DNA of 64,000 bases, from contig NC_134472.1 of NCBI RefSeq assembly GCF_964194025.1, forward strand, positions 9,920,001 to 9,984,000, given 5' to 3'. This document shows positions 4,584-54,987 of this stretch, piece after piece; positions within the stretch are counted from its first letter, which is position 1; each line of letters starts with the position of its first letter. A model generated the notes under the pieces. That model was not told the origin of the DNA and did no database searches. It was given only the letters and a program-made list of their open reading frames with translations. This DNA is from Convolutriloba macropyga (lineage: Eukaryota). Position numbers and translations under genes: made by a program.

Positions 4584-6007
4584 ATGGAATCTAAATTAAT
4601 GCTAAGAAATTTTAAACTGATTCTCTTAATTCTGATTGGTCAGTGTGTATGTGACGTGAATGTGCATTTGACACAAGAAAGCAATGGCAAGTCCGAAATA
4701 GACATTGACACAAATAATCGTGGATGTTCCCCCCAGCACGAGGTGGCTATGGGTGGATTCAGCAAGGCTAAAGTTTTCGCTAACCGCGGGGAAAAGGCGG
4801 CTGCCAAAGAGAGAATAAAGAATACGTGGGGAATAAAGCCTGAGCAAAACTACACAATGGAGAGATATCGTGAACAAATTGTAAACGGTGCAAACTATCT
4901 TTACGAGGTAAAAATCGGAATTATTTATTTTATTTCCTTAATACAATTTTTGATATGTCTCGTCAGTCAAATCAGAGAATACTAGAGTTGAAAATGTTTG
5001 TTTTAGTTTTAACTTTATTTTTAGTTTAATTTTAGTTCTTTTTTAAAAATTTTTAGTTTATAGTTTTTTTTTTCATTTTTTTTTTCATAGTTTTGCAATT
5101 TTTGATCTTGCTTGCTCGTCAAAACAGAGAGAAATAGAGTTGAATAGACAAGCCTATGTGTCGTATCGTATTAAAAGCATGCAATTGAGACCATATACGT
5201 TTCCATAAGACAGAAACAATCGTTCTTGGTATGCTTTCAAAAACCATCAAGTAAAGGACGAAACCAAATAAGCTCTCAAATGAAAGTAAAGTTTTGCTGC
5301 TGTGAAGATTAAAGAGTGACCTCAATCAACTTTCTACTTTTTTCACTGCAAAACAAAAAATAGAATTAAGAAAAACACTCCCACAGGCATCTAGTTATCA
5401 TTGCATCATTTAGATCTCTTACCACCATGCTGGACAGACCCTCCTAAATACATTTTTTGCCCGACAAAAAATCAATATTTGGCCTAGCATTATTAGCTGG
5501 TAATGATATTTGATATAGGTAATATTTGGTGGGTAATATAACCCAATGATTAAAGACGCAGTACCAAAAATTTAGAATTGGAAAAATTGTGAGTGAAGTC
5601 AAAATCTGTTTGCAAAAAAACACGTAATTTTAGTTCGGAAAAAAACCAAAGGAAAAATATCCCCATGGAAATAAACCCTATTTGACCTTTGACTAATATA
5701 AAACTGCGCATTTGTCGGAATTCACCATGCCTCGCGGGTCAGGGCTATGCCTTATTGGCCCCTAGGACTTGATATCACAACCGAACAAATAAGTGAACAA
5801 CCGAGCACCGACAGAAAGTGCAATTGGATTTATTTCCTAGATCAAGAAATTGATATATAATCTAACATAGGGTAACATTGTTACTTTTACATAATATTCC
5901 AGATCAAAACCCACGATGATGAAAGATTCAAGGTACTTGTTGATGCAACTGGATGCGGAAAAGCAAAAAGAATGGAAGTCGACGAGTGCCTGACGCCTGA
6001 GTTCTGA
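4584..6007 (+). CDS. Secreted stefin/cystatin-like protein 1 (G1), 142 aa; exons 4584-4907 and 5903-6007
   Basis: Hydrophobic signal peptide (LILLILIGQCVC), MGGFSKAK N-terminal trunk and QIVNGANY (QxVxG motif). Donor GAG|GTAAAA at 4908 and acceptor TTCCAG at 5902, phase 0. Exon 2 reads IKTHDDERFKVLVDATGCGKAKRMEVDECLTPEF*, and its end resembles the stefin C-terminus (DELTxF). Confidence 0.88.
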
Positions 6008-7067
6008 TCACGCATCGTCCTGGAATCCAGCGCATATGTGGTCAAAAAGGATCAAATGATTGTTGACAGTAGAACTGAAATCTCGTTAAATATAAATAAC
6101 TTTCGAATTTATTTGTATTAACTAATTTACCTAATTCAAAGATTGTTACTGCTATGTGCATTTTTGATTGTAGCATCTCAAATTACAGTATGTTGCATCA
6201 AAATCAATGGGCCACGAATGACATGCATTTGAAAAAGATAATCAATTTGCAAACCTGATGTAAAACTATTGAACAGGTGTGCTTAATATTTGAAGATCAG
6301 ATTTTTAACTTGATTAAATTGTCAGACATAAGTTTTCAATATTTATTATCAGAGTATGTTCTGCCGTTTTAATGCAGACACAATTTTATTCAAGAATAGC
6401 TGAAACTTAATAACCTAATATTTGAAAAAAATTTGTAAACATGTGTCATAAACGTGTGTCCCAAAAACTATTCTATCCTGTTTGTAGAAAAAAAAATTGC
6501 CGCCAAAACTAACAAACGAACAGAAACTCGGATCTCTTTTGTGAAGTGAAAGTTCTGGTTCTTAAAAAAATTTTTTAAATAATTTTTGTATAAAACTTTT
6601 TCATAAATAACACAATGGCACCAAATGCAATGATTATGAATTTTAGAACAGCATAATTAGTTAAAACTGCAAAATAAATCATCATTTGAACAACTTATGC
6701 AAGCTAGAAGACAACAGCAACCAGCTGAAAAAGCATAATTAATCCGAGTGAATAAAATCTTGTCTAAAGTTTCTGTTTTTTTCATTATTTCACGCAGTCC
6801 TATAATTTAACCAGTTAAGAGCAGCAAAGTATATGGTGTATAGTAAAGTTTACATTAAAACAATGAAATGAACCTTGTTAACTAAACACTACTAAAACTT
6901 GGAGCTGAAATGCTTGAATTATGAACCACACTGCAAAAAAATATCAAAGATCTTAAGTGTTCGTGACATTTTACCTCTTAAGAAGATGTGTTACCAGCCC
7001 TTTACTATTTCATCAAAAAAAGAACCATTATTTTGATCATTTTGTCAGGTTAGAACATAACAAGAAA

Positions 7068-7895
7068 GCTATCTGGTATGCATTGAGATGATAGTCAAAA
7101 ACATAATTGTTTTTGTCAGTAAATGGCAAAAAACAGAAAAGTTCTCTAAAAAGAGAAAGTTAACTACAAACAGCTGTTTTGAGCTGCATTCAAGGCGAAA
7201 ACAAATGAATCAATACTGAGTAAAAAAAACCATTCTCGTCTTTGCTTGAATTGAAGGATGCTGTGAGTGCAGAACTCAAAAATAGTAAAAAGATTCATGA
7301 ACAGTGTTAAAATTGGCAGTTCGAAATTATTTTGGTTTGCTCGAACACAAAATTTTTCCAGCAATTGAAAAAAATAACGTCCCTCGAATTTCTCCAAAAA
7401 TTGTATGAGAGTTTCCAAAAGCCAGGTATTGGATTTTTGGGGAAAAATGTGAAAAAGAAGGTTAAGTTTTGAGTATCTGGCTATCTGGTATGTATTGAGA
7501 TGATTATCAAAAAATAGAATATAAAACCTTTTTGTTTTTGTCAGTAAATGGCAAAAACAGAAAGTTTCTCTAAAAAGAGAAAGTTAACTACAAACAGCTG
7601 TTTTGAGCAGCATTCAAGGCGAAAACAAATGAATCAATACTGAATAAAAAAACCATTCTCGTCTTTGCTTGAATTGAAGGATGCTGTGAGTGCAGAACTC
7701 AAAAATAGTAAAAAAAAAAATTAAATGAACAGTGTTAAAATTGGCAGATCAAAATTATTTTGTGGTTTGTTGGAACACAAAATTTTGAAAAAAAATAACG
7801 TTCCTCGAATTTCTCCAAAAATTGTCTGAGAGTTTCCAGAAGCCATGGATTGGATTTTTGAGAAAAAAATCTGAAACAGAAGATTATGTTTTGGA
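7068..7895. repeat. Tandem duplication, ~410-bp unit, 2 copies
   Basis: GCTATCTGGTATG.ATTGAGATGAT starts at 7068 and 7480, and the following ~400 bp are near-identical. Confidence 0.92.
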
Positions 7896-9938
7896 ATCAA
7901 GATTACTAAAAAAAAATATAGCAGCTACCGCACAAGTGCATTTTGTAAAAATAAATTCAATGCAGCAGAAGGTCTTGCAGTAGTCTTCTGTCAGCATCAT
8001 CTCAATTGTTTCTTAAATAAAATTTTAAATGATTTGATCAAATTTTAAAGTTAAAAGTTTAAAAAGTTTAAGTTTAAAATTTGATCAAATTTTAAACTTA
8101 AATCAAATTTTAAAGTTATTTGCCTTATATGAAATTTAATGAAGAATAAAAAAATAGCTCTTTAGAGTAGTAGCTCAACGAGACAACAGATAAAAATTTC
8201 AAAATAGGATATAATTTTTGTTTTTGATTTCTTAGGAGCATCTGCAAAGCAAAAAGCAAACAAAATCGAAAAACATTTTGTTTGTTTGTTTGCAAATTCA
8301 ATTTAAAAATTAGGACAAACTTGATCCATCAAATTATCCATCAAATGTTGAAAAAGCAAAACATTAAAATTTTTATAAATATGATGTTTTCTGAACTGGG
8401 AAAATTGTTAGCAGACAGAAATGTACAAAACTCAGAAAAAAATGTAGTGTAAATTTAAAGTAATTTAAATTGATAGAAATATTATTATTTTAAAGAAAAA
8501 TAAATTTCAATTATAGAAACAATTCGGGATAATTTTGTTTGATGTAGCTATGTACAAAACAAGTTAACACACTTTCTAATTGGCTTGACATTCACCTCAC
8601 ACGTTCGATTCGTTTTATTTCCATTATGTATTCAAATTAATAAACTTAACTTCAATATATTAATAACATTACGTCAAAGAATGCTGCGCAACAATTGGGC
8701 TAAAGTTATAATAGAAAGCAAATTCAAAGTTTTTTCGTCTTCCTAAACTAATTGTGAACAGAAATTTTCAAAAAAGTCTTTGATACTAAAAGTTAAATTT
8801 GACTTATCTTTTTCAAAGAGTTTTCTGATGCAAAATTTAGCAAACTCTGTGTTTATTTCAAAGAGTTATTTTTCCGAGAAGTACTTTTTAGGTTTTGACA
8901 TTATGATCGTTTTTATTTGCTTGCCGATATTGTTTTACGGTTTGTAAAAGTACAATTAAGCTTTAGGTCTGCATTACACATAGACATGCGGGAAACATGA
9001 ACTATACAATTCGATTGTTTGTCAAAATTACAATTTTCTGAAATATTTGAGTTAAATCAACCTTCTACATTGACAGTTCAATATATCAAATACAAATTGG
9101 ATAAGCAATTGTGACTGAAATAGAAGTTACTGTGGTAATCTGAAACATAGGTCAAAGGGAATAAAAAAAATATAATTTTGAACTGAAAATACAGAAACTT
9201 GAGCTACTTTTCTATGTGAAAATATACAAAGAAAATTCAGATAAACTACAAATGATTACCATGATTATCCTGTAAAAATTGTGTGTCCTGTCTTCGTGTG
9301 CGTTGTTTCTCAGTCCATTATGAGAAAAATGATTGCCTATATTAGCTGGAAATCATCAGTTTGAGGTCAGGAGGTATCGAAATCGAGATTCTGCGGGTGA
9401 GAGAATTTTACGTTTGACATCCAATTGATAAGTTTTTATAATAGCCATAGTCTTAGAACCAACATTAGAATCGGTACTGAAATTTTTTCCATTATTGATC
9501 AATCAACATCAGTGTTCGCCTGGTAAGAAAGTTTTGTTTGTGAAGTATTTATTACATTAAGTCTACGTTCTAAACTTTGTGATATATCACAACACACGCA
9601 AAACAATCCATAAATGATTGTAAAAGCAATAAAAAACTAGATGCATTTTGAATGCACAACACCTTGTGTTGCTGGGGTTTTTGGGTTTTTGAGATTTTGC
9701 TTGGAAATCATGAACATCATATTTGACCTAGGCAGTATTCTTGCATGAATACGAGGAATTCGAGCATTTCATCCAATATTCGAAAAGATTACAGATAAGG
9801 AAAGAAATTAAAATTTTTTGCTACAGGATCAGAGATCACTTTTCACTTCTCCAATCGGGCGTACCTTTTGAAACAATTTAGAAAAATTGTTTAACAAAGT
9901 TTAGGATCCTTGAAAAGCTATTAAGAAATCGTACAATT

Positions 9939-10025
9939 CATATATGACCTAGCATCACCTCTCAGAATCATACATGACCTAATATAACCTCTATGTATCA
10001 CATATGACCTATTTTTTCACCTCTA
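9939..10025. repeat. Degenerate ~30-bp minisatellite, 3 copies
   Basis: ATGACCTA...ACCTCT occurs three times at ~30-bp spacing. Confidence 0.65.
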
Positions 10026-10490: not shown

Positions 10491-12202
10491 ATGAAGGCTG
10501 AATTCATTTTACCCCTTGTTCAGCTATTTCTCGTGATACTAATAGAGCACTCAATATACAGTATAGAAGTTGAAATAACAAGCGAGAGCAATGGTGACGA
10601 AGAAATCGACATTAAAACAAATAACGCCCAGGTTGAGAGCTCCACTTTATGGAAAAAATCATATGTAATTATGTTCAAAACGACAAAACAAACATGGAAA
10701 ACGATCGCATTTTAAGATGAAATTCCCAGTCTTCCCGTTTTTTGACCGCTGAAATTGCTTATGACCGGTTTTGGATCGGTATTTGTAAACGTTTTTGATC
10801 AATCATTATTGCGAAGCGTTCTTGTCGGGTCTTCTCAAAAGTAGCGTTCCCCTAAAAAGCCATAGAAAGTATAATTCTCCTTAAAATACTGCTAAAAATG
10901 TGGCACCCTAACAAAACGGCCCTTTTCTTAAAAAAGCGATTAAAACAGTCGAAAGAGCTCAAAGCTGTAGTTTCCGCAACTTAATCGTTTTTGACCGAAC
11001 TATAGAGAAATACTGTTATATAGTACAACAAACAGTCGATAAAAGATCTTTCCAATAGTTTCCTCATCGATCGACCAAAGTTTTTCAAATGTTGACTTCT
11101 CAAATAGGGTGATATCATTGACGAGATCTCTTCAAAATGCTTGGAAGAGTATGGGAGGTCTGTGGCAGGATACAGCAGTGCTGAAATTCTGACATCAGAT
11201 CAAGGGAGAGATGTGAAGGAACAGATAAAGAAGACATGGGGATTAAAACCTGGTAAAAACTACACTGTGGAAAGAGTTCGAACAGAACATCACGGCGAGA
11301 ACTTTCTTTATGAGGTAATTTGATTCACTTTTAGTTCTTATTGAAATTTTGGCGGATTAAAAATGAGAAGCAAGGTGCAATGTTTTTTGCTTCTGTTACC
11401 GTTTTTGCCCACAAAATATTGTAGCGCTGTCTTTTTAAACTACGTCCCTCATTGTAAAACATTGAAACGGTCCGAAGAAGAGTGTTAGAGATTTTTAAAC
11501 AACATTGAATTCCCAAAACTATAATAAGAAAGCAACATGGAAAGGAAGTGAAATTAAAAAACAAACAAACAAATAATTCAACATAAAATGTACACGTTGA
11601 GTCAACTATTTTGAAACCCATTATCCGTTCAGGAAAGTTGGTTGAAATGAAAAACCAAATGGGTCCCTCATTGTCTGATAAATTTTTTCATCAACATAAA
11701 ACTTGTATTTAGATATTTTTCAATTCTATTTTGCTTTAACCATTCGCAGAATATGCGGACCTTCTTTAGAAGAATGCCACGGTAGAATTGTGTACATCTG
11801 TTTAAGGCAGCTGCAATTTTTTCTGTCAAAGTACACTTTCACATACCAGTAGAGTTGAAATTGGAGAGCTGGAAGGATTTTTTAAATCTATGGTTGACAA
11901 AAAGTCTGCTGAGTATTTGAAAGTATGCAAAACACGCTAGAGTATCAGTTAGCTAAACCGAGTTTCAATTAGGTTGACTAATTCCTGATTTGCCTTCAGA
12001 TGCAGAATTAACCTAAAAAAATATCAATAGAAATTAAATTTCGTAATTCAGTTTATATATAATGACACAGTTGTTTAATTGCATTGTGTTTGAGATCAAA
12101 AATGTGGATGGTGTGAGACACAAGATACAATTGAACCCTAGTGAAGGATGTGGTAGAGCCAGAAGGATGGAAGAAGATGACTGTCTCACTCCTATCGAAT
12201 AA
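10491..12202 (+). CDS. Secreted stefin/cystatin-like protein 2 (G2), ~151 aa; exons 10491-10631, 11108-11314, 12095-12202
   Basis: Signal peptide present. IEVEITSESNGDEEIDIKTNN matches G1 VNVHLTQESNGKSEIDIDTNN, and IKKTWGLKPGKNYTVERVR matches G1 IKNTWGIKPEQNYTMERYR. Last exon reads IKNVDGVRHKIQLNPSEGCGRARRMEEDDCLTPIE*. All junctions are GT-AG, phase 0. The last acceptor is a GAG at 12092-12094, with an in-frame CAG alternative ending at 12070. Confidence 0.85.
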
Positions 12203-21078: not shown

Positions 21079-24000
21079 TGGTTATTAGTGGTTTTCCAAA
21101 AATGGACAAGGAGTTTTGGTCTTAATTAATATTTGTAACTATTTTATCTTTATTGCGTCTTTTCTGGTAGTCATATTATGGTAGCCACGGGTCTCATAGG
21201 TCCTCTTGAGTAGTTTGTTTTAGTCGTTTAGTAGTTTGTTGAACGATATGTTGATATGTTAATTATTTTTATCTCTTCCTCATTTGGTAGACAATTAAGT
21301 GAAAAATGTAGATGAGCGGGGTCGGAAATTAATGTGCAAACGCACATTACCGAGCCTCCTTGTTTCATTTCTTTATTTAGATACTGTATCAAAGGGAAAA
21401 TGTAATTTTAGGCAAATTTGAACTAAAATCGCTAAGTGGTTATTAGTGGTTTTCCAAAAATGGACAACGAGTTTTGGTCTTAATTAATATTTGTAACTAT
21501 TTTATTTTTATTGCGCCTTTTCTGGTAGTCATATTAGGGTAGCCACGGGTCTCATAGGTCCTCTTGAGTAGTTTGTTTTAGTCTTTTAGTAGTTTGTTGA
21601 ACGATATGTTGATATGTTAATTTTTATTATCTCTTCCTCATTTGGTAGACAATTAAGTGAAAAATGTAGATGAGCGGGGTCGGAAATTAATGTGCGAACG
21701 CACATTACCGAGCCTCCTTGTTTCATTTCTTTATTTAGATTCTGTATCAAAGGGAAAAATGTGTTTTTAGGCAAATTTGAACTAAAGTCGCTAAGTGGTT
21801 ATTAGTGGTTTTCCAAAAATGGACAAGGAGTTTTGGTCTTAATTAATATTTGTAACTATTTTATTTTTATTGCGTCTTTTCTGGTAGTCATATTATGTTA
21901 GCCACGGGTCTCATGGGTCCTCTTGAGTAGTTTGTTTTAGTCTTCTAGTAGTTTGTTGAACGATATGTTGATATGTTAATTTCTATTATCTCTTCCTCAT
22001 TTGGTAGACAATTAAGTGAAAAATGTAGATGAGCGGGGTCGGAAATTAATGTGCGAACGCACATTACCGAGCCTCCTTTTTTCATTTCTTTATTTAGATA
22101 GTGTATCAAAGAGAAAAATGTATTTTTAGGCAAATTTGAACTTAAATCGCTAAGTGGTTATTAGTGGTTTTCCAAAAATGGACAAGGAGTTTTGGTCTTA
22201 ATTAATATTTGTAACTATTTTATTTTTATTGCGTCTTTTCTGGTAGTCATATTATGGTAGCCACGGGTCTCATAGGTCCTCTTGAATAGTTTGTTTTATT
22301 CTTTTAGTATTTTGTTGAAGGACATGTTGATATGTTAATTTTTATCATCTCTTCCTCATTTGGTAGACAATTAAGTGAAAAAAGTAGATGAGCGGGGTCG
22401 GAAATTAATGTGCGAACGCACATTACCGAGCCTCCTTGTTTCATTTCTTTATTTAGATACTGTATCAAAGGGAAAAGTGTATTTTTAGGCAAATTTGAAC
22501 TAAAGCCGCTAAGTGGTTATTAGTGGTTTTCCAAAAATGGACAAGGAGTTTTGGTCTTAAATAATATTTGTAACTATTTTATTTTTATTGCGTCTTTTCT
22601 GGTAGTCATATTATGGTAGCCACGAGTCTCATAGGTCCTCTTGAGTAGTTTGTTTTAGTTTTTTAGTAGTCTGTTGAACGATATGTTGATATGTTAATTT
22701 TTATTATCTCTTCCTCATTTGGTAGACAATTAAGTGAAAAATGTAGATGAGCGGGGTCGGAAATTAATGTGCGAACGCACATTACCGAGCCTCCTTGTTT
22801 CATTTCTTTATTTAGATACTGTATCAAAGGGAAAAATGTAGTTTTAGGCAAATTTGAACTTAAATCGCTAAGTGGTTATTAGAGGTTTTCCAAAAATGGA
22901 CAAGGAGTTTTGGTCTTAATTAATATTTGTAACTATTTTATTTTTTTTGCGTTTTTTCTGGTAGTCATATTATGGTAGCCACGGGTCTCATAGGTCCTCT
23001 TGAGTAGTTTGTTTTAGTCTTTTAGTAGTTTGTTGAACGATATGTTGATATGTTAATTTTTATTATCTCTTCCTCATTTGGTAGACAATTAAGTGAAAAA
23101 TGTAGATGAGCGGGGTCGGAAATTAATGTGCGAACGCACATTACCGAGCCTCCTTGTTTCATTTCTTTATTTAGATACTGTATCAAAGGGAAAAATGTAT
23201 TTTTAGGCAAATTTGAACTAAAGCCGCTAAGTGGTTATTAGTGGTTTTCCAAAAATGGACAAGGAGTTTTGGTCTTAATTAATATTTGTAACTATTTTAT
23301 TTTTATTGCGTCTTTTCTGGTAGTCATATTATGGGAGCCACGAGTCTCATAGGTCCTCTTGAGTAGTTTGTTTTAGTTTTTTAGTAGTCTGTTGAACGAT
23401 ATGTTGATATGTTAATTTTTATTATCTCTTCCTCATTTGGTAGACAATTAAGTGAAAAATGTAGATGAGCGGGGTCGGAAATTAATGTGCGAACGCACAT
23501 TACCGAGCCTCCTTGTTTCATTTCTTTATTTAGATACTGTATCAAAGGGAAAAATGTATTTTTAGGCAAATTTGAACTTAAATCGCTAAGTGGTTATTAG
23601 TGGTTTTCCAAAAATGGACAAGGAGTTTTGGTCTTAATTAATATTTGTAACTATTTTTTTTTGCGTTTTTTCTGGTAGTCATATTATGGTAGCCACGGGT
23701 CTCATCGGTCCTCTTGAGTAGTTTGTTTTAGTCTTTTAGTAGTTTGTTGAACGATATGTTGATATGTTAATTTTTATTATCTCTTCCTCATTTGGTAGAC
23801 AATTAAGTGAAAAATGTAGATGAGCGGGGTCAAAAATTAATGTGCGAACGCACATTACCGAGCCTCCTTGTTTCATTTCTTTATTTCGATACTGTATCAA
23901 AGGGAAAAATGTATTTTTAGGCAAATTTGAACTAAAGCCGCTAAGTGGTTATTAGTGGTTTTCCAAAAATGGACAAGGAGTTTTGGTCTTAATTAATATT

Positions 24001-25024
24001 TGTAACTATTTTATATTTATTGCGTCTTTTCTGGTAGTCATATTATGGTAGCCACGAGTCTCATAGGTCCTCTTGAGTAGTTTGTTTTAGTTTTTTAGTA
24101 GTCTGTTGAACGATATGTTGATATGTTAATTTTTATTATCTCTTCCTCATTTGGTAGACAATTAAGTGAAAAATGTAGATGAGCGGGGTCAAAAATTAAT
24201 GTGCGAACGCACATTACCGAGCCTCCTTGTTTCATTTCTTTATTTCGATACTGTATCAAAGGGAAAAATGTATTTTTAGGCAAATTTGAACTAAAATCGC
24301 TAAGTGGTTATTAGTGGTTTTCCAAAAATGGACAAGGAGTTTTGGTCTTAATTAATATTTGTAACTATTTTATTTTTATTGCGTCTTTTCTGGTAGTCAT
24401 ATTATGGTAGCCACGAGTCTCATAGGTCCTCTTGAGTAGTTTGTTTTAGTTTTTTAGTAGTCTGTTGAACGATATGTTGATATGTTAATTTTTATTATCT
24501 CTTCCTCATTTGGTAGACAATTAAGTGAAAAATGTAGATGAGCGGGGTCGGAAATTAATGTGGGAACGCACATTACCGAGCCTCCTTGTTTCATTTCTTT
24601 ATTTAGATACTGTATCAAAGGGAAAAATGTATTTTTTGGGCAAATTTGAACTAAAATCGCTAAGTGGTTATAAGTGGTTTTCCAAAAATGGACAAGGAGT
24701 TTTGGTCTTAAATAATAATTGTAACTTTTTTATTTTTATTGCGTCTTTTCTGGTAGTCATATTATGGTGGCCACGGGTCTCATAGGTCCTCTTGAGTAGT
24801 TTGTTTTAGTCTTTTAGTAGTTTGTTGAACGATATGTTGATATGTTAATTTTTATTATCTCTTCCTCATTTGGTAGACAATTAAGTGAAAAATGTAGATG
24901 AGCGGGGTCGGAAATTATTGTGCCAAAGCACATTACCGAGCCTCCTTGTTTCATTTCTTTATTTAGATACTGTATCAAAGGGAAAAATGTATTTTCAGGC
25001 AAATTTGAACTAAAATCGCTGAGT
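21079..25024. repeat. 359-bp tandem array, 11 copies
   Basis: GGTTATTAGTGGTTTTCCAAAAATGGACAAGG recurs every ~359 bp. The ORF track repeats the same 62-aa pseudo-ORF at 21586, 21945, 22304, 22663, 23022, 23381 and so on. Confidence 0.98.
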
Positions 25025-25849
25025 GTCACTCGTTTACACACTATTCTACTAATACAATTCTAATCTTGAAACATGGGTCGTGAAAAGCCCGACAAAATCG
25101 AGCATGTATACTAAATTCTTCGAAAACTGGCTGCATAATTAAATTTTCTGCCGAACGATAAACAATATGCTGTCATGTTACTTTGATAGTTGGCAAAAAA
25201 TACTTACAATGTTATCATGACGGAAATCAAAGTGGCAAAACAATCTGAAACAATCCCGGTTATTTTCTTCCATTTGACATAGGTATTAAGTTGCGATAAT
25301 TACGGAAATTAACATACAAAGGTATATCACAGAATTAGTAGCTAAAAACAAAACTATAAACCTATTAGCATATCTATTAATTTCCATAACGCTCATTTTC
25401 AGATTTATATGAGCAGTTTTTTTTCTTTTACTTTTACTTGAAGAGCACTTTTTTCGACCTTGTAGTTGGAGTATTCAATTATTGCGGCTGCTAGGGATTC
25501 ACTAATAAAAAATGAACGAGGTGAAGTTAAATTGCAATGTTATAAAACAAAAACATAAAACTTTATCCCTCAAAATTCCATAAAATTCGATAAAATTCGA
25601 TGAATCAAAAAGCTCTTTATATAGTCCACTAATTATATAGCAGACAAAACTCTGAAATTATTTCATGTGGTTTTTTTGCATGAATTTAGTTCGATTTGTT
25701 TAAACGTAAACCCAGTTAAAATTGATGCGGTCGCTGTATTGTTAGCATTTTTTAGCTTCTGACGCGTTCTGAGACAAATTTTTCGATCTCTTGTTTTTCT
25801 GATCATTTTCATTTTGGAATACTCAAAAAATACATAACTGGTGGTGGTC

Positions 25850-26837: not shown

Positions 26838-29470
26838 ATGAGAGGTAATTGTTTGGTTGTGTTTACTGTGCTAATTAACACAGTTCTGGGTAACAGCCCG
26901 ATGAAACCTGAAGAATACATTAAGAAGTTTGAGGATTGCAAGGATGGTTTCGGGAATCAACTTGGAGACGGTTTCGGAAAACCAGTAGAACTGGGAACAC
27001 TGAAAGAACGTTTTGAAGCTTCCAAGGCTATTCGGACTGCTTTTCCACTGGTTCCCGAAGGAGTGAGAATCGAGCTTATGTCTGTAAACACAGATAATCA
27101 ACGGGTTCTCTACCAGGTAGATTATTGTACTAACTCTCTGTAATGATCTCATACTTTTAGTTAAAAAATATACAATCAGAGAGTTACTAACATTACTTGG
27201 TAGATAATGGCAATAACCCTTGTTTGGTACAAAGTTGCATGAATAATAGGAGAATTTATTAGAATTAGTAAGTAAGGTAGGCATAAAACAGACATAATTA
27301 CCCGGATTAGATGGAGAACTCCGTTTTATAATCTTAATACATGCAAGAGCGTTCCAAAAATTGCCCAACGCTTTTATTTTTGCGCCCCTTCCACTAACTA
27401 CTGCCCGGGTCGAGGAATTTACCCGAAAATAACATTTGAGAATAAAAAGAATGAAAAATACATCTAAGAATATCGAATTTTACTTACCAAAATGGCTTAA
27501 TTTAATTATGACAACATGACAACATTCAGTAATGGCGTGATCTATAGTGGCATCTATACGCTCAAGCGTACTGATCTACAAGCCTACATCAATACTTCCA
27601 TACTGATCAATTCTAAAAGCAATTCTATTATTTTTTTCAGTGCTTGAAATATCAGAACACAAATCTTACCAGTTTTACAAATCTTGGTCAAGACTTCGGT
27701 AACACTTACAAGCTGATTCCCCAGTCAACACCAACTTTTCAAAAACTTTGAGATAAAAATATTGGCAATTGAAAAAACTACGTAACGTGCCACGATTTCG
27801 GGATATTAAGTGCAATGCACTATTTGTAATGCTTTTTCCAGTTTCTTCATTGGAGGTATAAATATCTTTTTAGAGCAAAATCTGGCATCGTTTGTTCAAA
27901 GATTTAACTTGCAGACAATATTTTTCAATAGAAAACTGAAAATTTAGTAAGTTGTGACTTGAAATAGAAACTTTTTTCATAAAAGGGTCATAGTCTGTTA
28001 TAGAAAATTTCAATTGTTCATAGTTGAATGCAATGAAGAACAGGAAGTTTACTCTCGCTGCAAATAACTGTTTTTACGAGTCAAATTTTTGGGATATTGA
28101 GATAAATGTCTTGTCGTAAATTTCCACAATAATGATATCAAGATATCAACGAAGTATAAAATTAACGGAAAAATGTCAATGTTGCTAATAAAAATTTCAG
28201 CTTTGTGAAGTCTTTTTCACTGCCAAGGTCTTGAATTAGTAGTTTGAAGTTTTAAACTTTTTTTAAAATAACAGGACAGTATCAATAACTCTTCCTCTAT
28301 TTGTTTATTAGTGGTTGAAAAAAGCAGTTCATAAGCACGGCCGCGCGTTTAGGTTACGTGATTAATTGGTATTTAAAATTAATATGTGAACTAAATTATG
28401 TAAGAATAATTCTATAACCTAACACAGCAGACACCGCGTTTCAAAATTGGTTTTTCATGCTCCAGGTTGCTCACATCATAAATGTTTACTTTATCAACAT
28501 TAAAAGTCTTGCTTTTTGACTTAGGTAAGAAAAATAGTATACAAAATGAAAAATGGGAAAATATGCAAAAATAGTATGTCCAGCTTAACTCTCTGCTACA
28601 AGGTTTGCTTTATCTGCGATTCAAACTCTGCAAGTTAAAAACAATATGCTACATCAATACCCATCGAATTAAAAATGACCGTATAGATAACTATTTTTTC
28701 CTGATATAAAAATTTTATACAATTGTATTGTTCATAATCGCTATTTGCAGAATAAGCGCAAAAACGTTATCTTGCCTAGATGTTAGCGCGGTTTTTATGT
28801 TTAAAAAAGTTATCATGAGAAGTCGACGCAATTATTCCCTAACATTTCTTTAATTAAACGAATTAACCCTCTCAAAAACAAAAAGAAAACAAGTTTTTTG
28901 CTGTAAATTTGTAGCTCAAATTACTGTTATCAGTTAAGTTTAATGTTTTATGTGATTCAATAATCTGCAAAATATCTTTTTTTTGCTGAATTCTGATTAT
29001 TCATACGGGAAGCAGCTTGTTGACGAGAATATATTTCTTGCTTTGAACCTCGTTTGCTCTTTTGATTCAGATCTTGTAAGCTCTGATTTCGAGAATGAAT
29101 AACTAAAAACTCGTGTTTTTTTCCGTTTGGTTTCTATATAAATTTCTAGGTGTTGGATCCGTTTTCTGATTTTGATTCTGCAGTGAATTCATTTGTCACG
29201 TGACCTATCTTCTATTTCAATATTCATTTAAAAATGCAACTGAAAAATCAACCTATGGTAACTAGACAATTTTTGCTGCCAGGTTCAATTAAAATTCTAT
29301 CAGAAAATTGTTACAGTGCCACCGATATATTAAATTTAATCTGTTTCAGTGGTTTGTGTTTTCAGGTTAGCGACCTCAAGCGACACAGATTCAAAGTCTT
29401 AATTCAAGATCAAACAATGGCAAGAGCAAAGAGAATGGATAACAACGATTGTCTGGACGAAAGTTTCTGA
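26838..29470 (+). CDS. Secreted stefin/cystatin-fold-like protein 3 (G3), 127 aa; exons 26838-27116 and 29366-29470
   Basis: Signal peptide (CLVVFTVLINTVLG) and DC...GDGFGKPVE. Donor CAG|GTAGAT at 27117 and acceptor TTTTCAG at 29365, phase 0. Exon 2 VSDLKRHRFKVLIQDQTMARAKRMDNNDCLDESF* aligns without gaps to G1 exon 2 (12/34 identical). AATAAA at 29508. Confidence 0.85.
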
Positions 29471-38928: not shown

Positions 38929-39692
38929 ATGAGATTTCAAAACATTGCCTGCGCCGTATTTGTGCTGATCACAACTCTCAAAATGTCGAGATGCCAGATT
39001 GATCGGAACGCATATATCACCCAGCATACAAATTGTGTTGACAACTTTCCAGAAGAGTTCGGAGATGGTTCAAGTATTAGAGAGCCAGCGACACTAGAGG
39101 CACGGTTTAATGCATCTAGAGACATTCGAAGAATTTTTCAACTAATGCCAGAGGGAGTGAGAGTTGAGCTCGCGAGTGTCAATGGATTGAACCCCTTTTA
39201 CCAGGTAAAGCTATTTTTTATATTGAGTAAAATCAATTAATATTGCAGAAAGAAACTAAAACCTTCAAGATAGAGCTAAAAATTAAGTAAGAATGCTTTA
39301 CAACGTCCGAAACTAGAATAATTTTGGGTCTTTCCCATTATGCCCCCTCCTCAAATGAATAATAGCACCCCCATTATGGTATATTTACCATGATTGGCGG
39401 GGAGGGGGGGGGGGGCTATAGGTTATCTGACCACTAAGCTGTGGGGGGGGGGCTATAAAAGGAAATACCCATAATTGTGCGCTTAATTTTCCTGCGTCAG
39501 GTGAGAGATCTAGAGATGCGCAGATACAAGATTGAGATACATGGAGACATGGTCAAAGCGAGGATAATGGATCCAGAAGAGTGTCTAAAGTCATTCAATG
39601 ATGCTCTCAACAGTGCAGGTCGCAGTGTGAGCGGAGATTCGTTGATGAAACCGGATGAGAGAATTCTGGCGCTTTTAGACTTCGATTTATAA
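38929..39692 (+). CDS. Secreted stefin/cystatin-fold-like protein 4 (G4), 155 aa; exons 38929-39204 and 39501-39692
   Basis: Signal peptide present. RFNASRDIRRIFQLMPEGVRVELASVN matches G3 RFEASKAIRTAFPLVPEGVRIELMSVN. Donor CAG|GTAAAG at 39205 and acceptor GTCAG at 39500, phase 0. Exon 2 reads VRDLEMRRYKIEIHGDMVKARIMDPEECLKSF plus a 31-aa tail. Confidence 0.88.
39326..39470 (+). mobile_element. MITE (~145 bp) in the G4 intron
   Basis: Imperfect terminal inverted repeats GGGTCTTTCCCATTATGCCCCC and GGGGGCTATAAAAGGAAATACCC. Confidence 0.65.
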
Positions 39693-41960: not shown

Positions 41961-41993
41961 TTTAAAGTGTGGTAATTTTTGGATTCGATAGCG

Positions 41994-44900
41994 ATGATGC
42001 ATCTTTGGGTCATCTTTGCTTTGATAAATTTCTGCTATGCCCATAATGAAGAGTTAACAGACGCTGAGAAATTTTTTCGGGAACTGGAAAACTGCAAGCC
42101 TGGGTTCGTCAACTATGAAGCAAGATTTCCCGGATTCTCAAAACCAGTCGAAATAAAAAAGGTTGTGGATCGATTCAATGCTGGCAAAGAGATTTACAAA
42201 GTTTTTCCACTGGTGGGAGCAAGCATACGGATCGAACTCGTGAGCACCAAGCGGCAAGGATATGGACCCAATAGAAATGACATTGTTCTCTACCAAGTAT
42301 GTTAATCTGACGTATATACGAAATCTCGTTGAATAAGAGCTGAACTCAGAGTCCATGTTCTCTGAATTTCTATGAATAAGAGAAAAATTCAGAATGCACT
42401 TCTGAATCAGCTCTGATTCAAAATCAAAATAAGGAACTTTTCTCAACACTACAGACACACATAAAAAACTTGACATCGGTTTATTAACCGTTTTTATTCG
42501 GTTTTGGATGAAAAGGACAAAAAAACAGCCGAAAAAAAATCACAATTTTGATGTCATTCTGCTATGGTGAAGCAGAATGATATTTGTTTGCAAAGGTTTT
42601 GAGCTCAGAAAACCCTTCATAAATATTTTTCCTCCTGCATTGGTTCAAAAACAGATTGAGCTAAGGAAATTTCAGTGTTATTAGCCCTTCACAAAAAAAA
42701 TATAACAATTTAAAGTGCAAAAGTGAAGTTTTCTTAACAATAGCTTATTTCATTCACATAGCGTTTTAAAATCGACTATTTTTTTAATAAACTCTTGTGA
42801 TATGTGAAAAAGTAAAATCAGAAGTAAAATTCCTCTGCCAAAAAATTGATAGGAAAATTCTGTTTACATAATCACTAATTTTCCGTATGTCAACCAAACG
42901 TAAATGGCCAAAATTGCATTAATAAAACTAGCCCAATACAAAAAACACCACTTAACAAATTTTGGGACTTATCGAGCGTTTTTGTAGGTCTGAAATAAAA
43001 ATAACTGAAAAAAATGTGGTAACTGACAAATTAAAAATCTCAAATTACAAACACTAACTGCTATTTTTGATGTCGCATTGAGCTCAACCTCTTAAATTTT
43101 ATAAGTTGCCGAAAAAAAGTGAGAGGGTTCTACAGCACAAAGAGCCCGATCAAAAGAATACAAAAAACCAAACAAACTGAAATAAAAAATATTCTATGTT
43201 TTTTTTTAAAAAAAAATGTCTCTTTTTTCGCCGCAAAAAACCAACAAAAATCATAGATCTACTATTTTTGTTAACGAAGTAACCTCAAAAAGTGTGTTTT
43301 TAACTTGACTCGAGGAAATTTCCGACAACCTTTAATCTGTATTATAAATTTCGTCAAAATCTACAGCCATTGAATGAACTTGTACTTCCCAACTTTTATG
43401 TATTTATGTACTACCTGTCTTTCTGCTAGTTGGAAGAATTTTTCGCGTATATCAAAATCAGAGTTTCTCGCAGAACTAAACAACGTGGCGCAAATTTTGG
43501 TTTTGGTTGGGTTCTAAAAAAATCATCGTCTCCTTCCAACTCAGCGTCCTTTTAAGCACTGAGAAGACGCAAAGAAGCAACAAAAAAACGATCAAAAACC
43601 GACAGTTTCTTTTGAAAAAAAACGACGTTCGAAACGACGAAAAAGATCTAAAACCGATGCTTCCACTGGAAAAAAAACGACGTAAGAAACGACAAAAAAA
43701 CGACGAATAAATGATCATTTCTGGCACGCAAAAGATGACTTAATAATAAGAATAATAAATTGTTTCCACCAGTCAATAAGTAGCTTCACAATTACCTTTA
43801 CAAATACAATCACATATTTGACTGTGGGAGAGCACTATTGGGCTGATGGCCCGTTCTCAAGTGTCTCATTCAGTTTATCTGGATGAAAGTGATTCAAAAT
43901 GAAAAAAAGAGGAAGCACTGTTTGTCACGGTACCATTGAACCTAGCAGTAAAATCCTTATTCTGGTTTTGGAACGCCTTTGAGTTGTGATATTAAAACTC
44001 ATACAACTGTTCGATTATGTCCTCATTACCCAAAATATAAATATCTAGAAACTGATGAGAGAATTTTTTTGTTTCGGCATTAGATATGTTTTCAATCATT
44101 TCGATTATTACGTCATCGTAACCTAGAAGCATTCTTAAGACCCACCTTATCCTAACTATTAATGAAAAACTGTGAAATAGATTTTCACCTAGAGTTGTTT
44201 TGTTTTTAATCAACCGCTTGCTTTTTTCAGGCAGTTTGGCATTGAGGAACCCTTTGAAATAGGTGAAACATTATTTTGTCCCATTATGTTTTTTACTGTT
44301 TGCTGGAGTACCTCATAGGCATGTAATTCTGATGCTAATTAGATCCTATGTTTTATTCTTTCTTCAAAAGTGCTTTTCAGCTTTTTTCGATGAAAAATTA
44401 GCCGCACGATACGTTTGAGAACTTTGTCTATTTCCCTTATTGTTGTGATTGTTGTTGACCCGTATATCAAGACTACGTATTGTACTATTGGTTGTATGTA
44501 TGTTCTAAATGCTTTTATCATCTGTGATTCTCTTAAAACATTTCTCAGTTTATAAAAGATAGAACAATTCGACAAAAATTTTGTGACCACAAGCATTGAG
44601 TGCTTTGAGAAACGTAGTTCATTATCTAACGTGATGCCCAGGTATTTGAAACTTTGTTTTTCCTCAATTTTAGTGTTTTTTATGAGTGTTCTTGACACTT
44701 CATTTTTTTGATTTTTTTCATTACAAAAAGCATGCTTTTTGTTTTTTCCTTGTTAGGCGTTAGTTTGTTTTTTTTATGAGCCAATCATTGAGGTTATGTA
44801 GGCTTTGTTCTGATCATCGTCATTTTTCGATGCAGAGCTTCTGGTCTTCACAACAGTGTCATCGGCTTATAAAATAACATTTGATTTTTCTGGGACAAGC

Positions 44901-47478
44901 TTAAGTCATTCATGTATATAATAAACAAAAGAGGGCCAAGAATTGAACCCGGTGGCACGCCTAGTTCTATAAGCTTCAGTTTGGAATATTTTTCTCCCAA
45001 TAATGTATATTGCATTCGTTTGGACAAATATGTTTTTAAAATGTTGAATATAGAACCACGTAGACCATATCTATAACCCTTTGGCAGTAAAGTGTTTTGA
45101 TTAACAGTATCAAAAGCTTTCTTTAAGTCTAGAAAGGTGCATTTGGTTTTCTCGCTGTTGTTGTTGAGATTTGATCTTATTTCTTCTATTAAAGTTGCAA
45201 TTTAACTGTGCTCTTCCCGTGCCTGACGCCAAATTAAGAATCTGAGAGAATTTCAAAAACATTTAGGGAGTTTTGAATTCGATCACATATAATCCGCTCA
45301 AAGACTTTCCCTATAATTGGTAGCAACGAAATGGGCCTGAAAATTGATGGGTCATCTTTATTTCCATTTTTAAAGAACGGTAAAACTTTTGCAATCTTTC
45401 TATTTCTCTGGGTATTTTCCAATTTCTATGCATCTGTTAAACAATAGTTGTAAAGAGCTGTTAAACAGTCAGAAAATTTTTAATGAAAAAATTGTTCAAG
45501 TTACAGCAATCAAGGCTAAACTTGTTTTTACAGTTGTTGATAGCGTACTTTACGTCATTTCCAGATATCGATTTTAGAAACCTACTTTGAATCTGTTTTT
45601 CTATCCTAACGGCACTTCTTGTTAAAGATTCTGCATTTAATTTTTGCCCCATGTTTGGGAAGAACTCGTTAATATCTTCTATTTTATTTTGTGAGCAAAA
45701 AATAATAGAGGACTCTGAATTGCCGGCTAAAGAACTATAAAGCTGAAAAAAGTCTTTCTGTTTTTTTTACCGAATCGGTTTTAAGTAGATTTTGACAAAA
45801 AAGTTTGTTTTTTAGATCTGATGAGCGATTTAAGACTTTTACAATTTTTTTTGAAAATTTTTGTTAATTTGCGGACTTCCAGTTGCATTTGTCAGTTTCT
45901 TAAGACCACGTTTTTTCATCGCTAAGTTTCTAACATCATTGTTGATCCAATTTTTGTTCTTTTTTCGTGTAAGATGTTCTTCAAGGAGGTGACTGTTTAA
46001 TGCTTCAGTGAGCATTTCGGGAAAATTTTTGAAGGCGCTGTCTATTGGTAAGAGTTCTAAACTACTTCTGTGGACCTCTAATTGATACCTGAGATCCTTT
46101 TTGAGTCTTTCTCTCGGATTTGGATTATCTGGATTATGCCAATTGCGTTTTTTTAGAGCTTTAATTTACTTTTCTGGTCTGCCATCGAGGTCAAAAGAGC
46201 CATCTACCTTATGATGATCTGTTATACAGGTTGATTTAACTTTTGTTTTAATAAAAAAGTTAGAAAATATTGCGTCAATGAGCGTACCTTTGCAATTTGA
46301 TACCCTTGTTGGCTCATTATTATTAGATATAAAAAGACGTTTTCCGGCTTAAAAGCTTTTTAAAATTTCGGCGTTTTTGCTGTTTAATAAAAAATTAACA
46401 TTAGAATCCCCACAAAGTACGTCTTTTGTTTCGGGGTCAACCATTAGGCTGTCGAGATATCTATCAACCGTCAAGAAATTGGCTTCATTAGTGCAATTTG
46501 GTGGCATGTAAATTCACGAGAACCAGATTTGGTCTTTTATGGTTTTGATGGCAACTGTTAGTAGTTGAACGGAATTGGTTTCTAATTTTTTAACTATCTG
46601 ACAATTTATGTTATTTTTTAAGAAGAATGCAACAGCTCCACCTCTTTTTTACGATTGCTAGATATAATTGTTCGATAACCATTCAAAGAAAAACAGTTAT
46701 TGTTGTAGCTAGGACCTAAACGACGGAAATTAATGACAACGACATCAAAACGACGAAAACGATGATTTCTTACAGAAAAAAGCCGTTTTTTCGTCGTTGT
46801 TCTCAACACGGGCAGAACGAAAACATTGGTTAAATCTCGATTGCCTCTCGGATTTATTTCTCACTTTAAACTAAACCAGACAAAAGCAGAGTCTGAATCA
46901 GAAAAAACTTCATAGTCTGATTCATAGTCTGAATCAGAGAGTATTAGAGCAAAATGTGACATAAGCAGACTCTGAATAAGTTCTGAACAGTTTCTGAAAA
47001 ATTTCCTGATTCAGTGCAGAATTTTACTGTGAAATTGAAAATCAGGTTCGGGAAAAACACTTTGATTTGAACTATAAGAGCTGTTATCACATGTTTCTAT
47101 AGGACTGTAAATAATTCTTGATTGAAATTTGAATGACTTTGGCAGATTGAGGTTCCAGATCTAATTCAATGATGTTCATCTTTCGGGTTTCAACTATTGG
47201 GTTTAAGAATGTGATTTAACTTTTTTAAACAATTTTTTGTTTTGTAATTTTAGGTGTCTCACTCTTTCGGCAGATACAAAGTACAACTGCATAATGGACT
47301 GGCCAAAGCGGAGTTACTACAGCCTGGCACTTGCTTAGAACCATTTGGTTACGATAGCAACATTGACAACAGTATTATTGACAATCAGAACATTGACAAC
47401 AAGATTATAGACATGAACAACAATCGACCTTTACAAAGTTACAGGGTTCCACCCGAAGAATGGAAGGGTTATGAATGA
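41994..47478 (+). CDS. Secreted stefin/cystatin-fold-like protein 5 (G5), 175 aa; exons 41994-42296 and 47254-47478
   Basis: Signal peptide MMHLWVIFALINFCYA and NC...FPGFSKPVE. Donor CAA|GTATGT at 42297 and acceptor TTTTAG at 47253, phase 0. Exon 2 reads VSHSFGRYKVQLHNGLAKAELLQPGTCLEPF plus an IDN-repeat tail. Confidence 0.86.
43741..46715 (-). mobile_element. Decayed, 5'-truncated non-LTR retrotransposon (APE endonuclease + RT, CR1/L2-like), antisense in the G5 intron
   Basis: Minus-strand APE motifs: VLCGDSNVNF, EPTRVSNCKGTLIDAIF, ITDHH. RT motifs: FRPISLLPIIGKVFERII, FLDLKKAFDTVN, GVPPGSILGPLLFIIYMNDL, *ADDT (YADD with a stop, ~44858-44869), YLGITLD. There are many stops and frameshifts and a (TTA)n-like tail near 43741. 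Confidence 0.93.

Positions 47479-53063: not shown

Positions 53064-53065
<2 letters not shown>

Positions 53066-53113
<48 letters not shown>
53066..53113. repeat. (TA)n microsatellite
   Basis: About 24 TA units. Confidence 0.97.
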
Positions 53114-53118
<5 letters not shown>

Positions 53119-54101
53119 AATTTATAAATATATGTAACGCTCCATTACAATCCGAACATTTTTGAACTATAACAATTGACAATTAGATCAAAAATGGCTT
53201 TTCTTTTGCTGCTTCTACATTACAGCAAAACGATGTACCAAATTTTACCGTAATGGCTAACTTAACCCAAAAATTGTTATGAATATAAGTAATGAACTTT
53301 GGATACTCATCGAGTTATATTAACAAAAAAAACATTAAGTATCAACGGAAAGCATTCGATAGTTTCTTTGATAACTCCCCAGACACTGAATTAGACATTT
53401 GATAATTTAGACTCTGTCAAAAAATTTCCATAGGAAGATATTTCCAAAAAATTTCCATACTGGCAACTCTCCTCCAGAATTATTTGATATTTTACGAAAA
53501 CAAAATGTTGCAGAAAAAAAATGCTCACTCAAAATTGTTTCATTGGACCGTACCGGAGAATCAAGCACTCATTATTAATGATACAGCTGTATGAAAAAAA
53601 ATCTTTTCATCTGAACTTTGAAAAAAATGCAAATAGTTTTTCGTAAAGAGAGACCCAAAATACAATCCGAATCCTTTTTCATTGCAATACTCATCAATGA
53701 GACCAAAGCTAGCTTTGCTATTGATGCTCACCATTTGAAAAACCCAATTGTTCTAATTTACAGCTTTATAGTTTTTTGTGAAATGAAAGTTTTACTATAT
53801 CTAATATAAGCTAGGCGTTTTTTTGTAAATGTCGGTTTAAATTAGCTAAAAACTGCAAAAATAATATTTCCAGAAAACCTTTTTAGGAACCGGTACAGTT
53901 AACCTTAGTCCATATCTGACTTAGGGAAGATTGTGTGACCTTCGTTTGTCTTCACCACCGTTCAAACTGGGCGGGCAAAATGAGCCAAATAGGCATATTC
54001 GATGCCATTTTTTATTAAAAAAAGGAAAAAGTGATGAATTTCTAAAACTTTAGCTGACTTTTTTGGTCAAAAATGTTGGTTCAAGCAGTTCACCAACTCT
54101 A

Positions 54102-54201
54102 TATGATACCACTCACAATCCTCTACGATCGGCGAATTTTGACTGAACAAAAACCCAGTTGAGTATATAGTTCCTCCCCCACTAAAGTGGGTCGGAACAA
54201 A
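54102..54201 (-). mobile_element. Helentron/DINE-1-like element terminus, copy 3
   Basis: ATGATACCACTCAC...TTGACTGAACAAAAACCCAGTTGAGTATATAGTTCCTCCCCCACTAAAGTGGGTCGGAACAAA, same family as copies 1 and 2. Confidence 0.6.
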
Positions 54202-54545
54202 TAGTCAGGAAATCATAGAATGAATTTAACAAATTAAACAAAAATCAAATCGATCAGCCGACTTTGGCTAAACAAAATGTAGGTCTTCTGTAATATTCCT
54301 AACCCACATATGGGGGTGGGATAAAAATAATGAGACAATAATATTTCGAAATAAACCAATGAGCTGTTCGCCTTCGATGACCTTCAGACCTTTAAATTTG
54401 AGCACTGGTGAGTTCAGCTGCAAATTAAGACTTAGCATTTGTTATAATGGGACAAGTTTAAGACAACTAGACGAGTAACCACACCCAAGGATGAAAGAAA
54501 AACTCAGACAGTAGGCAAGAAAATACGTACTTGATAGTTTGCGAC

Positions 54546-54579
54546 TATAAAAGCCGATAGATGCAAGTTATATTCAGTT
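54546..54579 (+). promoter_or_regulatory. TATA box plus initiator upstream of G6
   Basis: TATAAAAG at 54546 and TCAGTT with its A at 54576 (30 nt later); ATG at 54658. Confidence 0.55.
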
Positions 54580-54657
54580 GTCCAGATTGTGAACAGTGCT
54601 TTGGAAGTTATAATATTGCATCGCATAATTTGCATTAAAACTAATATTCGAACAGAT

Positions 54658-54987
54658 ATGAGGCTTGAAACTTGGGTTATCGGCGTCATCGCTGTTTTCA
54701 TAAATGAGTGCGATGCACAAGCGATGATGGAGGAGTTAACTGAGCCTGAGGCATTTATGCTGGAGTTGGAAAGATGCGAGGCGCAATTCCAAGAGAGCCC
54801 TGATTTCCATTCAAGATTTCTTGGTTTCTCGAGACCAGTCGAAATGAAAAAAGTTGTGGAACGTTTCAACGCTGGCAAAGAAATTTACAAGGTTTTTCCG
54901 CTGGTGGGAACAAGAATACGGATCGAACTTGTGAGCATTAAGCAGGAGGGATTTGGAGACAATAAAAATTTTACTTATCTCTACCAA
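54658..54987 (+). CDS. Secreted stefin/cystatin-fold-like protein 6 (G6), exon 1 only (110 aa); closest to G5
   Basis: Signal peptide present. GFSRPVEMKKVVERFNAGKEIYKVFPLVG is nearly identical to G5. Donor CAA|GTATGT at 54988. No second exon is visible because the contig breaks at 55146. Confidence 0.85.

Follow-up and report, generated by a model that had tools for sequence, protein, structure and literature searches.

Tandem genes for putatively secreted, stefin-like proteins with a variable reactive-site loop in the acoel Convolutriloba macropyga

Cystatin-like stefins, described from flukes and myxozoans, are defined as stefin-type proteins that carry a signal peptide, may contain disulfides and group with the stefins, not with the type 2 cystatins; small multigene groups occur among them, such as the three smolstatins, and canonical stefins have neither signal peptide nor disulfides (PMC13233802). 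The present analysis concerns a stretch of 64,000 nucleotides of the acoel Convolutriloba macropyga (NCBI RefSeq assembly GCF_964194025.1, contig NC_134472.1, positions 9,920,001-9,984,000; hereafter the window, within which positions are counted from its first letter). It contains six genes, G1 to G6, all on the forward strand, whose RefSeq label is "uncharacterized proteins", without Pfam domain. Taken as a whole, the explanation that we consider fairly probable is that these genes belong to a tandem family of secreted, stefin-derived proteins, in which G1 is an inhibitor and the other members are diversified at the reactive site. The family would be a new offshoot of the stefins, restricted to the species or genus and tandemly expanded in C. 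macropyga.

In G1, exon 1 (4584..4907) encodes the signal peptide, a Cys, the GGFS trunk, a helix, strand beta2, the QIVNG loop (4863-4901) and the start of beta3, and the last exon (5903..6007) encodes the end of beta3, beta4, an L2 turn with GCG, beta5, the terminal ECLTPEF and the stop. G3 has the same layout, with an exon 1 (26838..27116) running from the signal peptide through the loop (27075-27110) and a last exon at 29366..29470, as do G4 (38929..39204, loop 39169-39198; last exon 39501..39692) and G5 (41994..42296, with an 18-residue loop at 42237-42290; last exon 47254..47478). Exon 1 of G6 (54658..54987) also extends from the signal peptide through an 18-residue loop (54928-54981), and its last exon is missing from the assembly because an N gap (55146..55345) comes right after the donor, starting 159 nt past it. 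G2 differs by a separate signal-peptide exon (10491..10631, phase-0 donor GTTGAG), spliced in phase 0 to an exon 2 (11108..11314) that carries the Cys, the AGYS trunk, the helix and a loop (11273-11308) without QxVxG; its last exon lies at 12095..12202. Every main exon closes with Y[EQ] followed immediately by a phase-0 GT, and each of the five last exons is preceded by a pyrimidine-rich AG and contains the pattern R[FHY]K[VI]...[KR]A..[ML]....CL.

An initial annotation of this DNA had proposed these six genes, their loops, their signal peptides and their splice junctions. The six loop strings were found in forward frames at the positions given above. All six genes open with a Met and a hydrophobic segment (Kyte-Doolittle mean over ten residues, 2.4-3.2), which in G1 and G3-G6 is reached by the upstream open frame within the main exon itself; the N-terminal segments are thus signal-like as proposed, and the proteins would be secreted. 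The spliced models of G1, G3 and G5 are identical to RefSeq proteins XP_075246149.1, XP_075246151.1 and XP_075246153.1. Altogether six RefSeq proteins (from 90% clusters) end exactly as the spliced models do, three for these genes and three for the members Ga, G8 and H1 located outside the window, and this agreement is independent gene-prediction support for the junction between main and last exon. Past the CL(x)P motif, unrelated low-complexity tails were seen in G4 (39590-39689, about 30 residues), G5 (47350-47475, rich in Asn, Asp and Ile) and G8 (L038:8935-9054, acidic), the other members being tail-less.

The family extends beyond the window. Profile hidden Markov models (HMMs) of both exons were searched against the whole genome (1.18 Gb, about 30% GC), then against 164 kb around the window. 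Genome-wide, matches were confined to one chromosome scaffold, C5 (9.857-10.003 Mb), and the unplaced contig C1811, with main and last exons paired, in order and all on the forward strand, which is a gene family far beyond chance. The cluster of six proposed initially is therefore made of real genes but was undercounted: at least 14 co-oriented genes are present, at least 12 on C5 and two (H1 and H2) on C1811. The additional C5 members, all forward-strand HMM pairs, are Ga (main and last exon at 9857169 and 9858894), Gb (9864719 and 9866427), Gc (9881273 and 9885768), Gd (9919531 and 9919842, ending about 70 nt upstream of the window), G7 (9994123 and 9996227) and G8 (10002077 and 10002869). 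A phase-0 GT follows [LFIV][YI][EQL] in 14 of 14 genes, and a good acceptor was present in all 13 that have a last exon. RefSeq protein XP_075264319.1 of C. macropyga is a member of the family.

The placement of the family among stefins starts from G1, which, as proposed, is stefin-like with an intact QxVxG. It combines a GG trunk with QIVNG at stefin-like spacing: 40-41 residues separate GG from Q, which matches the 41-42 residues that we take to be the spacing in stefin A. C. macropyga has canonical stefins of its own (C11:51.55-51.72 Mb), whose exon 2 is 102 nt long, as is known from vertebrate CSTA and CSTB, and ends six residues past the Gly of QxVxG, where a GT follows. The alignment of G1 with this exon ends at the same column, the phase-0 donor of G1 stands at exactly the canonical position, and in the alignment a phase-0 GT occupies this place in 14 of 14 family members. 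By our own estimate, for a domain of about 100 residues with one intron, the chance of such a match in position and phase is about 1 in 100-300. Comparison of G1 with the same exon by hhalign gave P 0.0026 in the correct register.

Searches with G1 alone pointed the same way. In a phmmer search of the PDB with the spliced G1 domain, the top match was Smolstatin, a secreted cystatin-like stefin (E 0.023), and Dictyostelium cystatin-A2 was also in the list, both in the right register. An AlphaFold2 model of G1, built from an alignment of 25 rows, six of them full-length RefSeq proteins that served as anchors, had a predicted local distance difference test (pLDDT) score of 84.2 and a predicted template-modelling (pTM) score of 0.77, with a helix at residues 25-39 and strands at 47-55, 62-68, 73-78 and 84-88. 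It shows the cystatin fold, that is, a trunk, a long helix wrapped by an antiparallel sheet, and hairpins L1 and L2. Foldseek lists for this model, in PDB and Swiss-Prot, consisted mostly of stefins, cystatins, fetuin-B and monellin; mouse Stefin-1 had a probability of 0.98 at a template-modelling (TM) score of 0.58. The best structural matches of the model were CsStefin-1 and FhCyLS-2, the engineered scaffold SQT-1C being among the best too. By protein language-model features, the neighbours of G1 are Cystatin clusters (0.91, with 197 features shared); its ten best family-bearing matches were all Cystatin. By these several independent lines, G1 is a stefin-type cystatin.

A structural prediction of G1 with a possible target is consistent with retained function. 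A cathepsin L gene of C. macropyga (C2:14.75 Mb), given as two mature-domain exon products, was docked with the G1 domain, and an interaction prediction score from aligned errors (ipSAE) of 0.74 was obtained, against 0.01 for the best control; among 78 solved complexes 51 reach that mark, as do 2 of 108 mismatched pairs. The runs agreed on at least 92% of contacts, and partner pLDDT was at least 69. On the G1 side the contacts were H52 and A55-S60 (the GG trunk, AMGGFS), E97-G102 and N104 (EQIVNG), D122 and T124 (L2), and L138-P140 (LTP, beside the C-terminal Cys); on the enzyme side they were the Q19-W26 segment with the catalytic Cys (Q19/C25 region) and the opposite wall of the cleft. The predicted pose is the classical tripartite wedge with an added C-terminal contact. 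G1 probably still inhibits C1 cathepsins, most likely as a tight-binding competitive inhibitor of these papain-like enzymes, whose active-site cleft would be entered by the trunk, L1, L2 and the C-terminus. The repertoire of Peptidase_C1 genes is large, with 54 exon matches genome-wide and tandem clusters at C5:72.11-72.20 Mb and C2:14.748-14.758 Mb, and these peptidases are possible partners of the family.

The family falls into two clades, in the tree as in the identity matrix. Clade A comprises Ga-Gd, G1 and G2, and clade B comprises G3-G8, H1, H2 and an extra copy from another haplotype. The split has a support of 98/99 and corresponds to the upstream (A) and downstream (B) halves of the cluster, with the border inside the window. 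The two clades are homologous: hhalign aligned A with B over 93 of 97 columns (98.8%, E 7e-17). Main exons alone gave 91% end to end over 60 columns (E 1e-6) and last exons 98% (E 2.5e-13), and since both match separately, shuffling of just one exon half is excluded. Reciprocal HMM searches told every real sequence from 300 shuffles each, G8 excepted. The stefin fold claimed in the initial annotation for G3-G6 is therefore suggested through homology, by the A-to-B alignment together with the identical gene structure; direct modelling (of H1) and feature searches (with H1 and G3) did not return it. The string ERFNA of clade B was considered as the ERFNIN motif of cathepsin propeptides and rejected for its wrong spacing, ERFNIN being a motif of interspersed residues.

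In the course of these alignments, beta2-L1-beta3 (R-I-E-L...L-Y-Q) was seen to resemble beta4-L2-beta5 (R-Y-K-V...), so that MAFFT cross-aligned the two when given exon fragments. The resulting misalignments were fixed by adding the six full-length RefSeq rows. The resemblance could be an internal repeat or mere hairpin periodicity.

A number of results weigh against the proposed descent and function. Pfam Cystatin (PF00031) gave no match up to E 10, either with single exons or with full-length G1, G3, G5, G8, Ga and H1, and a genome-wide scan with this profile found only the canonical stefins, on other contigs. The family profile retrieved no cystatin from PDB, only chance matches (ribosomal proteins, phage gp88), and none among 1.84 billion representative proteins, where only C. 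macropyga's own copies were real; matches of this profile to a Kre9_KNH repeat (P0013) and an InlB B-repeat (P0014) were spurious. Nothing was found by hhalign between the main exon of the family and the canonical stefin exon 2 (Prob 0.55%), and in word-indexed searches the G1 exon returned its own open reading frame only, the family alignment three self matches, and the stefin reading frame of C. macropyga no candidates. The motif of the second hairpin, Leu-Pro in stefins and Pro-Trp in type 2 cystatins, is absent from the family, whose L2 reads G-x-[AG]-[KR], with GCG in G1 and G2. No Foldseek match of G1 reached E 0.001. For clade B, the sole AlphaFold2 model, of H1, was made from an alignment lacking C-terminal rows and showed a helix followed by strands at a pLDDT of 53.5, and Foldseek matches with this poor model were meaningless; language-model features gave nothing usable for H1 or G3, and Pfam and PDB profiles gave no cystatin signal. 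The docking result shows likeness, not binding, and may reflect solved stefin-papain complexes that the predictor has memorised; with the enzyme given as two chains, the three-chain set-up departs from the calibration of the tool. Finally, expression is supported by RefSeq models only, and no dN/dS (ratio of non-synonymous to synonymous substitution rates) above 1 was found, that of the loop staying below this value.

The lack of a significant cystatin match at the family level would be expected if the family did not derive from stefins, but from an unrelated helix-plus-sheet domain, PepSY-like or convergent, with the QIVNG of G1 a coincidence. PepSY (PF03413) resembles the family in its helix on a sheet of four strands, in its role as a propeptide that inhibits proteases and in a similar Y-x-hairpin-K-V-x-V-D pattern; a PepSY propeptide was the second PDB match of G1 (E 0.048), Pfam PepSY matched at E 0.29, and PepSY-type entries occurred in the fold lists and in some AFDB clusters. 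We nevertheless hold such an origin to be highly improbable. The Pfam score stayed below the gathering threshold (11.9 versus 24 bits), the structural Z was lower (4.3-4.8), and PepSY domains are mainly bacterial and fungal. Moreover, PepSY cannot explain why the family shares intron position and phase with the stefins of its own genome, an intron evidence to which it has no counterpart, and the GG-to-Q spacing, presumably that of stefin A, as well as the language-model matches of G1, all Cystatin, argue for the stefin origin.

Comparison of the members shows where they have changed. In the 14-sequence domain alignment, the mean pairwise BLOSUM score was -1.64 for the L1 columns and -1.58 for the linker between the N-terminal Cys and the Gly trunk, against +0.6 to +2.4 for the remaining segments, the C-terminal strand with its CL(T)P motif being the most conserved. 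In a sliding scan of 13 columns, the eight lowest windows were all located in the linker, and the L1 window came ninth of 100. The length of L1 ranges from 10 to 18 residues across G1-G6. In the G1 model, the variable segment is indeed the L1 hairpin, as the initial annotation had it, with loop residues 56-61 between strands 47-55 and 62-68. The further claim that this loop is hypervariable needs to be narrowed: L1 does vary more than the framework, but two segments stand out as most variable, L1 and the linker, of which the linker varies even more, and the L1 enrichment in replacements was significant in a single pair of genes. This pair is G5/G6, the youngest informative one, in which replacements affect 8 of 13 positions in L1 versus 7 of 45 in the framework (Fisher p = 0.002) and 9 of 13 in the linker (p = 0.0004). 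No significant L1 enrichment was found in H1/H2, G1/G2 or G3/G4, and the loops of Ga and Gb are identical.

Between G5 and G6, Nei-Gojobori estimates were dN 0.09 and dS 0.38 for the framework, dN 0.42 and dS 0.55 for the loop. Framework dN/dS was 0.24 in this pair and 0.31 in H1/H2, the two youngest informative pairs, so that the framework is under purifying selection, in line with the initial proposal that the intact copies are selected. Loop dN is about 4.5 times the framework dN, and the loop omega of about 0.75 agrees with relaxed constraint as well as with diversifying selection at a few sites, between which 13 codons cannot decide.

Relaxed constraint in young, partly redundant duplicates, several of them drifting to pseudogenes without any selected specificity, would account for a loop ratio that stays under 1 and for an L1 enrichment reaching significance in only one of five pairs, loops being the most variable part in any protein family. 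It would also suit Gb, which has lost its start codon, and Gc and Gd, for which upstream exons were not found; for all three no RefSeq model was found, and RefSeq models are the only backing of expression in the family. As an explanation for the whole family we regard it as rather unlikely, because at least 12 copies, though deeply diverged (19-45% identity), have kept their reading frames and GT/AG sites intact, and because the framework is constrained as just described. In the canonical stefins of C. macropyga, moreover, the L1 hairpin is among the best conserved parts, and the constraint pattern is therefore inverted in the present family; its release here points to a changed constraint, not to ordinary loop noise. 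For some copies, relaxation is possible.

What was changed and what was kept also bear on function. QxVxG is found in G1 only (QIVNG); G2-G6 and the eight members outside the window lack it, which makes a loss in 13 of 14 genes. The trunk Gly is conserved (GGFS, AGYS, DGFG, GDGS, PGFS and LGFS from G1 to G6) and present in most of 16 sequences. A Cys pair is nearly invariant, with one Cys N-terminal and the other in the C-terminal CL motif (Cys48 and Cys137 in G1). A third Cys, besides the conserved pair, was seen in the L2 turn (GCG) of G1 (Cys126; about 5960-5975) and G2 (about 12155-12170), and may be free or serve dimerisation.

The loss of QxVxG from all members but G1, with an L1 that differs in length and sequence over a conserved framework, could mean that G2-G6 no longer inhibit proteases and form a repertoire of binders on a stefin scaffold, L1 recognizing microbes, algal symbionts, mucus or prey components. 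Such re-targeting was the reading of the initial annotation, which named mucus, venom, immunity and symbiont recognition as possible uses. Language-model features see no cystatin in G3 and H1, G1 counts an engineered scaffold, SQT-1C, among its best structural matches, and the host lacks canonical immune pathways, many of its immune-responsive genes being acoel-specific (PMC12849515). We nevertheless judge this repertoire unlikely: most members retain the Gly trunk, a protease-binding element, variation falls on the segments by which modelled G1 touches the protease, a known pattern of inhibitor families, no dN/dS exceeds 1, and 14 germline copies make a small repertoire. A related proposal, that clade B as a whole (G3-G8, H1, H2 and the haplotype copy) has left protease inhibition to become a germline-encoded set of secreted recognition proteins, with linker and L1 binding microbial or algal-symbiont ligands, appears improbable to us as well. 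If true, an animal without conserved immune signalling pathways would possess, in clade B, a recognition system of non-canonical type. The identifiers of the family genes (LOC or XP) are not mentioned in the supplements of the immune-challenge study (PMC12849515). According to the published studies (PMC12849515, PMC13650328), RNA-seq data of C. macropyga exist; they comprise PRJEB75559 (specimen txConMacr14) and PRJNA1332086 (adults, juveniles and Vibrio-challenged animals).

Diversification of the reactive site in an inhibitor family is the most economical reading. The ancestor would be a type 1 cystatin (stefin) to which a signal peptide was added, together with a single conserved pair of Cys; the latter would form a disulfide between the linker at the N-terminus and the CL(T)P motif at the C-terminus. 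The members other than G1 would have kept the framework and mostly the Gly trunk while L1 and the N-terminal linker were replaced. In the docked G1 model, the protease is touched by L1 (97-102, 104) and by that end of the linker which adjoins the Gly trunk (H52, A55-S60); L2 is short and conserved. Hypervariability of the reactive site is well known from serpins as well as from inhibitors of the Kazal and Kunitz types. Because of this precedent, of the retained Gly trunk and of the many C1 peptidase genes, an altered inhibitor specificity is favoured for the non-G1 members, which may be directed to different proteases, either the animal's own expanded cathepsins (in its digestive and its algae-bearing cells) or foreign ones.

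Placement in the stefin lineage gives an uncharacterized acoel-specific family a concrete function that can be tested. Acoels digest intracellularly, and C. macropyga houses Tetraselmis algae in endolysosome-rich cells (bioRxiv 10.64898/2026.03.06.710013). Because of these traits and of the many C1 cathepsin genes, a diversified secreted set resembling cathepsin inhibitors could plausibly regulate digestion as against the maintenance of symbionts; a role in defence is also plausible. Either role would matter, since canonical immune signalling is reported to be missing from this animal (PMC12849515).

The assembly around the family has some features of its own. A contig of another public assembly of C. 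macropyga, L044, is divergent from the primary sequence (87-91% nucleotide identity) and carries the G6 last exon 648 nt past the donor (L044:10978-11154). An additional family gene lies on it another 8.7 kb along (P0010, L044:18684-20034) and is missing here in the primary assembly. L044 is probably the alternate haplotype; the genome of this species has 3.65% heterozygosity, and an alternate haplotype was deposited (PMC13650328). At the gap, the difference between L044 and the primary assembly may be one of copy number between haplotypes or a mis-join. Two satellites were noted in the window. The first (21079-25025; 11 copies of a 359-bp unit, 96% matches) occupies part of the G2-G3 spacer, where clades A and B meet, and the second (56220-62819; a 120/241-bp unit, about 51 copies) directly follows the gap that truncates G6.

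Among known systems, artificial libraries on stefin or phytocystatin scaffolds (SQT, Affimer/Adhiron) were selected for binding, whereas the present family consists of 14 germline genes, with an L2 that is conserved, not variable. The CRES subgroup, fetuins, monellin and SQAPI have kept the cystatin fold and lost the motifs for cysteine proteases, and all appear in the fold lists of G1. Fetuin-B is re-targeted to astacins and meprins, and SQAPI to aspartic proteases. These proteins belong to lineages derived from types 2 and 3 or to plant lineages, and their relation to the family is one of fold, with no closer tie in sequence.

Canonical stefins (MEROPS I25A; human CSTA and CSTB; the C11 copies of C. 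macropyga) share with the family the fold, the domain size, the GG trunk and the phase-0 intron six residues past the QxVxG Gly. They are cytosolic, signal-less and disulfide-free, a type from which the complete members depart by their Met plus hydrophobic segment and their Cys pair, and they have an extra intron opening the 102-nt exon 2, in the helix region, where the main exon of the family is uninterrupted. The canonical stefins of C. macropyga are tandem too, with four copies of exon 2 within 165 kb (C11:51555303-51719002) and one on the unplaced contig C1105. QxVxG, the most conserved element of the fold, is now among the least conserved in the family, and the scaffold is retained.

The closest counterparts are the cystatin-like stefins of flukes and myxozoans (FhCyLS-2, 6I1M; CsStefin-1, 5ZC1; Smolstatin1, 8AND), which like the family have a single domain of stefin size with a signal peptide. 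They have GG and QxVxG in common with G1 and are the source of its best match in sequence (Smolstatin) as well as of its best structural matches; G1 has their stefin-type domain and a signal peptide, and is grouped with stefins by its best matches. The C. macropyga family differs from them by its at least 14 tandem genes, its conserved pair of one N-terminal and one C-terminal Cys, the lack of Leu-Pro in L2, the loss of QxVxG in 13 of 14 genes and the lack of a Pfam Cystatin match. The hosts differ as well, those of the cystatin-like stefins being parasitic, whereas C. macropyga is a free-living photosymbiotic acoel.

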